Shown one piece after another: positions 37,220 through 41,899 of a stretch of 64,000 bases of DNA; position 1 is the stretch's first letter, and the number at the start of each line of letters is the position of its first letter. A program made the translations under genes and the position numbers. Below the pieces are notes generated by a model. That model had not been told where the DNA came from. It did no database searches and saw only the letters and a program-made list of their open reading frames with translations. The DNA comes from Haplodiscus bocki. Taxonomy: Eukaryota. The stretch spans positions 85,498,001-85,562,000 of the forward strand of contig OZ296652.1 in assembly GCA_965655095.1 (NCBI GenBank), written 5' to 3'.

Positions 37220-38772
37220 TATGTAATAAGCAAGAAAAATTATTCATTCAGTAGGGTCGTTTTTCTTTTTTTTTCAGACCAAAATTGCCAACTCTTTTTA
37301 TTCAAAAATAAATGACAGCAGTAGGCTTAGGACAAGGTTATCAAGCAGTAGGTTCGGCGTTCGAGTCACTGCCCTGCCAAAAACTTTTACGATTTATCCC
37401 TAACATTTTTCGATACCCGAAATTAGTGAAAGACTAAGGGGTTCCCCTATGAAAATTTTCGGCACTGTGAGACAAAAAATTTTCGACGAAAAATCTTGAT
37501 ACTCTCCCCTCCCCTCTTATCCATAAACTTTTTGGCTACCGGAAATTTTCTGAAACACAACACAGAAGGGTTCCCCTACGAAGTTTTTCGGTACTGTGAG
37601 ACAACAAATTTTCTATAGAAAATCGTGATATTCCCCTCATAGGCATAAAATTTTTCGATACCAGAAATTAAAGAAACACTAAAGCGTTCCCCTACGAAAA
37701 CTTTCGGCACTGTGAGACAAAAAATTTTCGACGGAAAATCTTGAAACCCCCTCCCCCCCGCCCCCTCTCTTATCCCTAACATTTTTCGATAACAGAAATT
37801 TTCTGAAACACAGAAGAGCTCCTCGACGAAATTTTTCGGCACTGTGAGACGAAAATTTTTCAATGGAAAATCGTGATACCCTTTTGCATAAAGTACAGAA
37901 ATCAGTGGTGGAACTGATTTGTAAAAACTCTTTGAAAACTAATATCAAAACAGTAGTTTTGTTTTTAACCGTTTGCAAAAATTGATCAAAATATTCGTAG
38001 TTGGGTGTAAAATATGCCGGTGCTAGCCGGCCGTCTTGTTCATCTTTTAAACCAATATTCAATTGCTTGCAAAACTGCTTCAAAAAGTATCGGTGAAATT
38101 TCAAAAACAAGCACCAACAAATTGACGTGTATGACACCCTTGAATAATCTGAAAATTATCCGGAAAAAATACTGGACATTTCGATAACTTTCAGAAAAAA
38201 AAATTACGCTATTTGTAATACCGAAACATTACGTGGAACCCCGTTGCCTACACCAAAATATTTCAACTAGTGGCATTCACGAGACGCTGTGATGCACATT
38301 GATATGATCATTCAAAGGGGAGGCCCGCGCGTTAGGCAGACAAGCAATTAAACAAATCACTGGGACAAAAAGCAGAAAAAGAATGAAAACGAATGAATGC
38401 TTCAATTTAATGGGTCATTGAAAGTATTTGTAAATTCTCTCGGGTTACAGTAAATCGCTGTACTTGCATAGTTGCCCGGCTAACACACTTGAAACAGCTT
38501 CACTTCACAGCGTAGCTGACGTAACTATTACAATCAACCAACAGATGCCTGGAAAAAAGGTCAACGCATGTCCCTTTAATATCGAAATCCTTCGGTTCCG
38601 ATATTACAATAGTTTAATTGATAGAATATAGTGTTTTTTCACTATGCTTTGAATTTTAATGCGTATTTTTAGTCATTGTGTGGTTCGAATGGCGATTCTT
38701 TTCAACGTTTATTCCCTAAATTGGAAGGCAGAAAATATCCTTAAGCTAGCCATGCGTCTTCTTATTGATTAC

Positions 38773-39045: not shown

Positions 39046-39169
39046 TTTGAAGGAAACGAATGAAGGTTTCAAAATCTGAAATCAAGCTGCAATTAAAACA
39101 TAAGCGACATGAATTTTGTGCTTGGTTTGAGAACGATGGATCAGCGCTTTAAAAAACTGCGAAGCAGCC

Positions 39170-39358
39170 TGTTGTGATCTCTAATACTCGAACGATAACC
39201 AGAGCTAGGTAATCTCGAAGGAAACAATTACTTGCAAAGATTCAACTCACCAAATGTATATATTTATATATATTACTGGCACGAACATGTCACTGAAAAC
39301 AAAACAACACTTTATATATGATCAACCGTATCAACTAATAATAGATATAGTCATCACA
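39170..39358 (-). repeat. 3' LTR of mini element
   Basis: Direct repeat of 40726-40914; preceded on the minus strand by the PPT. Confidence 0.97.
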
Positions 39359-39655
39359 CTCGCCCTCTTCCTTTTTCCTCGTACGCACGCTTCGTCGTAA
39401 TGGTTGGTCAGGCATGTTCGATTGGCATGAATGCGTCTTAGCCTCGAACGGCGAAGAAGGCAACGGTTGAATAGGCTCAGTCTGGCTGGTATTCGGAAGT
39501 TTCAAGGTTTCTGATTCATCGATTGTCGAAAGGCTACTAGGCCCCGGAACGTCAACAGCTCTCTTCGTGACATCCGGTACTGAAGAGTCAGCATCATCAG
39601 GTACCAGTACGTCCTTCCCAGACCCTGATCTTCCATCTGTACTCTCAGCAGCAGT

Positions 39656-40636
39656 TCATCTCGCGACATATTTCGTATTCACAGTATCCACGGTGTTCTT
39701 GTCCGTATATGCCACTACAGCATGGTGAGGTGACAATACTTTGACAACTCTAGCTGGCTGTACCAACGGATCGTCCTTAGAAGTCTTGTTGAAGTTCTTC
39801 ACGTATATCGGCTCGCCAGCTCTCATCCAGGCGGGCGTCAATGTAGGGCTCGAACGAGTAGTCATCTGTTCTTTCTGCAGATCGAGTGATGATCTCCTGC
39901 TGAATCCAAAGAATCGATTATGAGGTGACTCGAAGCCTATAGCGCGACTTCCTAATGAACGAATGTTCATCAATGCTGCGGGTAACCCTTCATCCCATAA
40001 TCCAATCGGCTTGCTAGACTGTTTTAGACGTAGCTTCACAGTTCTCCAAATGATACCATTGACACGCTCACATTGACCATTTCCGGCTGGGTTGTACGGG
40101 GTTGTTCGAGTCTTCCGGACGTTCCACCGTTCCAGAAAAGATCTGAAGTCGTGACTCTCGAATACACTTCCGCGGTCAGAGTGCACCGATTCAGGTGGAC
40201 CGAATAACATGAACAAATGGTTTAATGCTTTGATCGTATTAGCCGTAGTTGCCTCTTTCATAGCAAAGGCAAAAGGGAATCGTGAGAATTCGTCGACGAC
40301 CGTCAAGAAATAACAGTTTCCACCTTTCGATGGCTTCTTAGGACCGACAAAATCGATGGAAATCCGTTCCCAAGGAGTAGACGCCGTCACTAGATGATTT
40401 ACTGGTGGACGGTGAAATCGTGGCTTCAGCTCTAAACACACTTGGCACTTCTCAATGTGTTGTTTCACCTTTGACTGTAAACCTGGAATATCAGCAATTC
40501 GCTGGATGAACCCCACTGTTCGGGCAATCCCAGGATGAACCATCTTGTCATGAACTTGGGATAAAATATAGTCAATGTTTCCCGAAATAAATGGTTTCTC
40601 TAAGTCTGCCTCGGCATAGGCGCATACACGGCTCAT
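39656..40636 (-). CDS. Gypsy integrase (HHCC zinc finger plus DDE core), 326 aa from the first in-frame ATG
   Basis: HDKMVHPG...CQVC; PWERISIDFVGP; LTVVDEFSRF; HSDRGSVF; TTPYNPAGNGQCERVN. The catalytic D, D, E are intact. The frame stays open for 106 more codons after the TGA at 39658-39656. Confidence 0.9.
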   Translation of the reverse strand: MSRVCAYAEADLEKPFISGNIDYILSQVHDKMVHPGIARTVGFIQRIADIPGLQSKVKQHIEKCQVCLELKPRFHRPPVNHLVTASTPWERISIDFVGPKKPSKGGNCYFLTVVDEFSRFPFAFAMKEATTANTIKALNHLFMLFGPPESVHSDRGSVFESHDFRSFLERWNVRKTRTTPYNPAGNGQCERVNGIIWRTVKLRLKQSSKPIGLWDEGLPAALMNIRSLGSRAIGFESPHNRFFGFSRRSSLDLQKEQMTTRSSPTLTPAWMRAGEPIYVKNFNKTSKDDPLVQPARVVKVLSPHHAVVAYTDKNTVDTVNTKYVAR

Positions 40637-40701
40637 GGCATCAGCCACGGTATTCAACCTTCCTGCTCATCAGCCTAATTGTTGTGATAAACTTTTTAAA
40701 T

Positions 40702-40723
40702 AGTGACATGTTCGTGCCAGTAA
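40702..40723 (-). promoter_or_regulatory. Primer-binding site complementary to the element's own LTR (putative self-priming PBS)
   Basis: Minus-strand TTACTGGCACGAACATGTCACT begins 2 nt after the 5' LTR end and is the exact reverse complement of the minus-strand LTR sequence 40850-40829. Confidence 0.85.
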
Positions 40724-40725
40724 AC

Positions 40726-40914
40726 TGTTGTGATCTCTAATACTCGAACGATAACCAGAGCTAGGTAATCTCGAAGGAAACAATTACTTGCAAAGATTCA
40801 ACTCACCATATGTTTATATTTATATATATTACTGGCACGAACATGTCACTGAAAACAAAACAACACTTTATATATGATCAACCGTATCAACTAATAATAG
40901 ATATAGTCACCACA
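40726..40914 (-). repeat. 5' LTR of mini element
   Basis: Direct repeat of 39170-39358; followed on the minus strand by the PBS. Confidence 0.97.
40848..40874 (-). promoter_or_regulatory. LTR core promoter: TATATAAA plus TCAGT initiator (copy in 3' LTR at 39318-39292)
   Basis: Minus strand reads CATATATAAAGTGTTGTTTTGTTTTCAGTGAC; predicted +1 is the A at 40850. The TATA starts at -24, slightly closer than canonical spacing. Confidence 0.6.
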
Positions 40915-41899
40915 CAGCCCGCATGGGTCCGAAAGTCGAAATGGAAACTGATGAAATGTCGTGACGCGAAAATAGGCGCAACTAGCGTTGCCCATGGGCT
41001 TCAAGTAAAAAGGTGAAAAGTATTGAGTTATGGCAAATCATCAATGCAATGATAAAGTAGCAACTGCATAACGGAAAAGCTAGTAAAGTTGCAAAACCTA
41101 GCGAAAAACTTGGCGGAAATCCAATTTACTGACTACCGATAAAAAAGCATGTCTTGTGGGAGTCCACAATTTGTAGTGCGCTGATAGTTCAACAAATTTC
41201 TCTCGCGAAAAACGATCAGCAGAAAAGCACATCCATCTTTGATCCTTACCTCGTCGACTAACCGTATGAGAAGACTGCCAAAGGGAGTTAGGTTAAAAAA
41301 ACTCCAGAAATTCCTATTTCTATTCTAGTTCGACGAAAACTAAGTAAATTCAGAAAATTTTCGACGGCCGAAACTTTCCTCTGAATATTCTTCTAGGAAT
41401 CGCTTGCTCTCCATTGGTACTAGATTGTCGATTTAGCTGAGTAGCTGGAACAAAATGCTTAACGCTTAGTTCAAAATCGTCGGCAGAAAAACGTTTTTTG
41501 CAGACTTTTTCTGGTGGAAACATTAGAAAAAGACGCACACTTATCCGAGTACATTCTATCTAGGAGGTGACACAGGGTTCCACTTGGCGCTAAATGTACA
41601 ACAGTTACTTTTACCCAAGAAAACATCATGAAAGTAGGTATAGATTGGTTGTCGTAACTTCTCAAAAAAACAAGGCGAAAAAGTGAAAAAGCAGCTTGGT
41701 TGTTTGTGCTTTTGGCGTAGAAACTATGTTAAAGGTTCATTAGTTTCGGAGACAAGGCTGGTCGAACAAGAACTGTCACGAATTCAACAATTTTCAAAAA
41801 AAACGCCAATATAAGGGCATTCTTGTTTTCATTCGAAGACCTGAAAATTACCTTCCTGATATGTAAATAACGAAGAGATAGCATAGAATAGAAAATATC

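Follow-up and report, generated by a model that had tools for sequence, protein, structure and literature searches.

The question raised by this locus is how a Ty3/Gypsy LTR retrotransposon of an acoel worm begins its reverse transcription when the sequence directly behind its LTR is complementary to the element itself. The window, a stretch of 64,000 nucleotides of Haplodiscus bocki (GCA_965655095.1, contig OZ296652.1, positions 85,498,001 to 85,562,000), contains a perfect 22-nt inverted repeat that links the primer-binding region to the LTR. From the sequence alone, the initial annotation proposed that this repeat is a self-priming signal, that the duplex is about twice as long as that of Tf1, that its end marks the transcription start (+1) at 40850, and that an integrase without a chromodomain may indicate a separate self-priming lineage. 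To evaluate these proposals, the repeat was compared with the other copies of the family in the host genome and with relatives from other animals. The repeat was confirmed exactly as it had been described. Its interpretation was supported only in part, in that self-priming is strongly supported, and better than could be known from the window alone, while the 22-nt length and the +1 are not.

An atypical copy of a small Gypsy family

An inverted-repeat search recovered arms at 40702-40723 and 40829-40850 that are 22 nt long, 100% complementary and 105 nt apart. The same primer-binding site (PBS) side arm also pairs with the 3' LTR copy at 39273-39294. The arithmetic expectation for a perfect 22-nt inverted pair in 20 kb is about 1e-5. 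The 156-nt RNA from 40850 to 40695 folds with this duplex at -56.7 kcal/mol (z = -8.2), with 0 of 200 shuffles as good. As the initial annotation stated, two nucleotides separate the LTR end (..ACAACA, at 40726) from the PBS-side arm, and TCAGT spans 40852-40848. The element lies on the minus strand at 39170-40914 and consists of the following parts.

40915-40919, no strand: target-site duplication GGCTG on the 5' side of the element; the same 5 nt flank both LTRs
40726-40914, minus: 5' LTR, 189 nt, TGTGGTG...ACAACA, 98.4% identical to the 3' LTR
40867-40874, minus: TATATAAA, a possible TATA box conserved in the LTR alignment, 24 nt before 40850 and 30 nt before A40844
40849-40865, minus: pyrimidine-rich tract plus AG, a 3' splice (trans-splice) acceptor inferred from DNA copies, conserved in most LTRs; the exon would start at T40848
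40843-40848, minus: TGACAT, six exon bases between the acceptor and the primer segment
40829-40842, minus: primer-forming segment GTTCGTGCCAGTAA, with the inferred primer 3' end at A40829; it complements the PBS in the copies of this family, with single changes in a few decayed ones
40724-40725, minus: GT spacer between the LTR end and the PBS
40710-40723, minus: family PBS, TTACTGGCACGAAC, 14 nt
40704-40709, minus: ATGTCA, read as a copy of the primer bases upstream of the 14-nt segment; full-length copies read GTTTTC here
40669-40703, minus: reverse complement of the host spliced leader, 32 nt plus 3 further 5' bases
39359-40668, minus: remaining internal region (end of RNase H, integrase and 3' untranslated part), equal to full-length positions ~2678 to the 3' LTR, with 96.7% identity to the copy L031
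39656-40657, minus: integrase open frame, 333 aa, with a zinc-binding H2C2 domain and a core domain and no chromodomain
39359-39379, minus: polypurine tract just before the 3' LTR, also present before the 3' LTRs of other copies
39170-39358, minus: 3' LTR, 189 nt
39165-39169, no strand: target-site duplication GGCTG on the 3' side

Only about 1.35 kb lies between the two LTRs. About 1.3 kb downstream of the element, at 37401-37891 of the window, four tandem units of about 114-130 nt (61-87% alike) overlap a long open frame with repeated ...RFS.E.F.SHSAE.FRRG.L motifs.

In the 1.5-Gb host genome the LTR has at least 35 matches, many of which lie in pairs about 3.97 kb apart, so that the full-length element measures about 4.17 kb. 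Full-length copies carry one gag-pol frame with the domain order protease, reverse transcriptase, RNase H and integrase, and the best solved match is the Ty3 Gag-Pol polyprotein (E = 1.4e-63). Together with the TG..CA ends of the LTRs, the 5-bp duplication and the polypurine tract, this places the family among the Ty3/Gypsy (Metaviridae) elements. All eleven full-length copies examined are interrupted by stops or frameshifts, their longest stop-free stretch being 376-1,033 aa of about 1,230. Their LTR pairs are 91-99% identical, and other copies also have 5-bp target duplications (GACTT, ATGTC, ACATG, GAAGG, ATACA). Two further arrangements were observed within the family (L numbers denote the individual sequences compared, C numbers the host genome sequences). 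At L040 (C1:27406305-27414478) two full-length elements in tandem share the middle LTR (LTR-internal-LTR-internal-LTR), with one GAAGG duplication at the outer ends. At L028/L029 (C5:43374620-43375546) LTRs lacking their first 38 nt, each with a PBS behind it, are repeated 756 nt apart and preceded by the same foreign sequence, a local duplication of a rearranged 5' end.

Comparison with these copies demonstrated that the window copy is an atypical, internally deleted one. In full-length copies the LTR is followed by GT, then TTACTGGCACGAAC, then GTTTTCATG, and the gag ATG lies 6 nt after the PBS. In 18 other LTR+PBS copies of the family the perfect complementarity is 14 nt or, in a few decayed copies, less; counting one G-U and one A-U pair, full-length copies reach 16 nt. 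None of 20,000 shuffles reached 14 nt. In one full-length copy, L010 (C4:56891936), base 15 behind the PBS is A, as in the complement of the primer, instead of the usual G, which could be a trace of partial primer copying or a plain transition. Bases 15-22 of the window arm (ATGTCACT) were found in only three copies genome-wide: the window copy, L041 (C8:44235294) and L042 (C1:194702631). The claim of a duplex about twice as long as that of Tf1 is therefore not supported.

The spliced leader behind the primer-binding site

To determine the origin of the extra bases, we examined what follows them. The 33 bases that come next in all three copies match nothing in the full-length element, yet they have about 1,486 matches in the genome, each with a sharp end. 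In the opposite orientation this sequence forms the first 32-35 nt of 3.9-kb LINEs (for example L079:5954-9851, at C4:33677153-33681050, with endonuclease and reverse transcriptase, a PHD-finger ORF1 and a (TACA)n-like 3' end) and of several other unrelated sequences. In one case it is joined exactly behind a pyrimidine tract plus AG that sister copies still retain. At L059 and L061 some leader copies are followed by a partial inverted copy of the leader itself, which suggests snap-back synthesis at the 5' end of the RNA template. The sequence is identical to the spliced leader published for the acoel Symsagittifera roscoffensis (PMC9911081). Followed by GT, it occurs 1,162 times, mostly in tandem arrays with periods of about 1.7-2.7 kb (C9:72.47-72.65 Mb and beyond), 9.6 kb (C7:57.91-57.99 Mb) and 15.6 kb (C2:147.40-147.45 Mb), which are presumably spliced-leader RNA gene arrays. 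The identification of the leader rests on the published sequence and on these arrays. A terminal inverted repeat of a DNA transposon or MITE was considered as the source of the 33-nt filler and rejected, since most loci have one copy only and the sequence is the 5' end of the LINEs. A splice junction as the cause of the internal deletion was likewise rejected, because 41 bases absent from the full-length element lie at the joint.

The LTR reads TTGTTTTGTTTTCAG/TGACAT-GTTCGTGCCAGTAA, in which the slash marks the end of a good 3' splice acceptor. On the strand opposite to the element, the three copies read leader, TGACAT, the 14-nt segment, AC and the complement of U5. This is an RNA-sense 5' end that is continuous with the start of minus-strand DNA, which is the signature of a primer and its extension product, although the copies fix the primer/DNA junction only to within the 14-nt segment. 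The leader ends in AG, as does the LTR acceptor TTTTCAG. The 22 nt are consequently 14 (PBS) plus 6 (TGACAT, copied) plus 2 (the AG at 40850-40849 that leader and acceptor share), and the complementarity stops there for a trivial reason that gives no evidence of a start site. The initial proposal, in which the first 22 nt of a transcript starting at A40850 of a TCAGT initiator form the functional primer, can draw on the perfect complement and its position 2 nt after the LTR, on the TATA-like box upstream, and on a primer segment overlapping TCAGT in the Maniola relative as well. We nevertheless consider it unlikely, because full-length copies contradict it, the extra 8 nt occur only in three deletion derivatives and run on into the leader complement, and the first T of the TATA box is only 24 nt from 40850. 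A start at A40844, 30 nt from that box, would give an RNA whose first 16 nt pair with the PBS region, as in Tf1, but this is inference only.

The three copies differ from one another in ways that point to independent events. They belong to different LTR subtypes, carry three leader variants and resume at different full-length positions, ~2678 in the window copy, ~1601 in L042 and ~3900 in L041. The joint of L042 carries a 17-nt local duplication and that of L041 an inverted duplication. L042 has a T-to-G change in its LTR and the matching A-to-C change in the bases behind the PBS, which fits copying and not chance. The 541-bp L041 and the window copy both have two LTRs and a 5-bp duplication, indicating that they were made by reverse transcription and integration and not by later DNA deletion. 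A DNA-level accident was evaluated in this context, since leader-capped LINE copies are very common in this genome. A leader-capped LINE that inserted and was later deleted down to its last 33-35 nt would have had to do so three times with the same left end and three different downstream joints, and neither a parent copy with a whole LINE at that place nor LINE sequence beyond the leader in any of the three copies was seen. A replication template switch at the 14-nt inverted repeat would have copied the pyrimidine tract of the LTR and not the leader. We regard both versions as very unlikely. A search for sense-orientation retrocopies of leader plus R found none, which is uninformative.

Primer identity in the family and its relatives

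A host RNA serving this PBS would be a tRNA or small RNA whose 3' end is ..GUUCGUGCCAGUAA. The search of the host tRNA set for such an end had been set as a test beforehand, and no tRNA was found to fit. The exact 14-mer occurs 45 times in the genome against 7 for the control, and all sites lie in family copies except two, neither of which holds a tRNA. A pattern for a canonical T-arm plus acceptor end ..GTTCGTG, which could miss unusual tRNAs, gave 9 hits against 6 for the control, none of them a tRNA, and the window has no tRNA gene. A primer ending ..GUAA cannot be a mature tRNA 3' end, as tRNAs end in CCA.

To investigate whether the arrangement extends beyond this family, relatives of the polyprotein were examined. 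These are single-frame proteins of ~1,200 aa on 3.7-4.3-kb contigs, called 'K02A2.6-like' where sources name them, and relatives show the same domain order of protease, reverse transcriptase, RNase H and integrase. LTR and PBS could be read in nine of them, with 41-50% protein identity: two JGI and two ENA metagenome contigs, the ctenophore Mnemiopsis, the sea anemone Actinostola, and the Lepidoptera (butterflies and a moth) Maniola, Hyposmocoma and Melitaea. Each has ..CA, two bases, and then 10-15 nt complementary to its own LTR, with a different sequence in each, and at most 2 of 20,000 shuffles reached the observed length in any of them. This is covariation at family level, and no single host RNA could serve them all. 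The gag ATG follows 2-20 nt after the PBS in most of them. In six (L081, L082 and L084-L087) the paired LTR segment ends in AATAA followed by an A or more, so that the polyadenylation signal and the 3' end of the primer overlap; R would then be very short in this lineage. In the five relatives from hosts that are unknown or known to trans-splice, a pyrimidine tract plus AG lies at the start of the segment, while two of the three Lepidoptera elements lack it, which is suggestive only.

The minimum-energy fold of the full-length 5' RNA, with or without the leader, closes on the primer/PBS duplex around three U5 hairpins, which resembles what reviews describe for Tf1 (PMC7175516). It remains conceivable that the complementarity is merely a structural stem, for packaging or dimerization for example, and that a tRNA, tRNA half or other host RNA is the primer; retroviruses also have U5-leader stems, and priming here is inferred from sequence alone. 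This appears unlikely, given that the complement always begins exactly 2 nt after the CA of the LTR, where the 3' end of a primer must sit, that PBS sequences differ between relatives, that no tRNA matches, and that the three copies place the RNA segment in continuity with the first bases of minus-strand DNA.

Self-priming is established for Tf1 and proposed for the Tf1/sushi chromoviruses, Tcn1-like elements and the plant copia TAR lineage (PMC4600332, PMC6317226, PMC6934838). As in Tf1/Tf2 of Schizosaccharomyces pombe, Tj1 of S. japonicus and the Tf1/sushi group, the PBS complements the element's own LTR-derived 5' RNA, the duplex is of similar length (11 nt in Tf1, 10-15 nt here), and here too the primer would have to be released by a cut at the 3' end of the paired segment (PMC7175516, PMC4600332). 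In contrast to that group, the hosts are animals from acoels to butterflies, the paired segment ends at or in the AATAAA signal in most relatives, and in the three atypical copies the paired segment would have lain 39-41 nt inside the RNA, behind a spliced leader. No chromodomain was found in the window integrase, in the full-length copies, in seven intact relatives (E <= 0.05) or in the precomputed domains of 120 relatives, which agrees with the impression in the initial annotation. Architecture and the names given by sources suggest a Mag-like, 'K02A2.6-like' affiliation, with a size of about 4-4.3 kb, one ~1,200-aa gag-pol frame and short LTRs of 103-281 nt ending in ..AYAACA. The motif evidence is mixed, since the 5' end TGTGGTG fits the CsRN1 motif of the same source better (PMC3601003). 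Outside the older subscription literature, we found no statement that Mag-like animal elements self-prime and none of a spliced leader recorded next to a PBS. In C. elegans Cer1, SL1 trans-splicing was reported only for the subgenomic mRNA and not for the full-length RNA, and its PBS fits tRNA-Pro (PMC3315495). In the leader-capped LINEs of the present genome the leader is in sense orientation at the 5' end, whereas here it is inverted and internal, next to a PBS; in both, transposon RNA would have received the host leader and been reverse-transcribed with it. In retroviral and Ty products, plus-strand strong-stop DNA that reads too far into the tRNA primer leaves primer-derived bases directly behind the PBS and reveals which RNA primed. 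Here the extra bases are the element's own 5' end plus a host spliced leader, and the products are integrated deletion derivatives.

A proposed route and its meaning

Taken together, these results led us to the following account, which we hold with fairly high confidence. The 14-nt LTR segment (40842..40829) would fold back onto the PBS (40723..40710), the RNA would be cut after ..CCAGUAA, and that 3' end would be extended into U5. In the case of the window copy, the priming RNA would have been trans-spliced, with the host leader joined at the acceptor AG (40850-40849), so that the primer was leader plus UGACAU plus the 14 nt. Plus-strand strong-stop DNA would have copied this primer to its very 5' end, adding ATGTCA and the leader complement behind the PBS. 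With no matching partner on the minus strand, that end would then have landed at a non-homologous internal site, here full-length position ~2678, deleting gag, protease and reverse transcriptase, before normal integration with intact LTRs and a 5-bp duplication. The sequence anatomy, its occurrence three times with different downstream joints, the identity of the leader and the conserved LTR/PBS complementarity in relatives were established directly by the analysis; the trans-splicing, the RNase H cleavage, the 3' end of the primer, the order of strand transfers and the status of trans-spliced RNA as a side product and not the normal template are deduced from them. The four sequencing runs found to contain the element, all of one study, behave like genomic DNA of the sequenced animal when aligned to a full-length copy, and they merely show the window-type and L041-type junctions again, adding nothing independent. 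With only three such copies, all defective, they may record accidents and not the normal route.

Alternatively, trans-spliced RNA may be the normal genomic RNA, the LTR having no working promoter of its own. All three copies carry the leader, U3 is only 64 nt, the acceptor is conserved in most LTRs and, as described above, precedes the primer segment in five relatives, and LINEs of the same genome are leader-capped. However, a 39-41-nt 5' overhang on the primer gives plus-strand strong-stop DNA a non-matching end, every such copy is defective, and a start at A40844 would suffice for Tf1-like priming. We therefore regard this alternative as possible but tentative. If it is true, a widespread, chromodomain-less animal Gypsy lineage self-primes and, in hosts with spliced-leader trans-splicing, carries a trans-splice acceptor in its LTR directly before the primer segment, so that host read-through transcripts are trimmed into replication-competent, leader-capped genomic RNA. 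In effect it would be a promoter-poor LTR element that borrows the trans-splicing of its host to define its 5' end, in parallel with the leader-capped LINEs of the same genome.

Self-priming has been demonstrated only for Tf1-type chromoviruses and predicted for a few plant and fungal groups, and here a separate, very widespread animal lineage shows the same logic. Annotation pipelines that look only for tRNA-type PBSs will mis-handle this lineage, while searching for a PBS followed by the complement of the leader is a simple way to find such primer fossils in other trans-splicing animals. The genome itself supplies evidence that normally needs biochemistry, in the form of three integrated by-products that, in our reading, kept a DNA copy of the primer; because that primer would have carried the spliced leader of the host, it could only have been the element's own processed RNA. 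At the level of their DNA, the three copies also indicate that the RNA of an LTR element is trans-spliced in an acoel and that such RNA enters reverse transcription.
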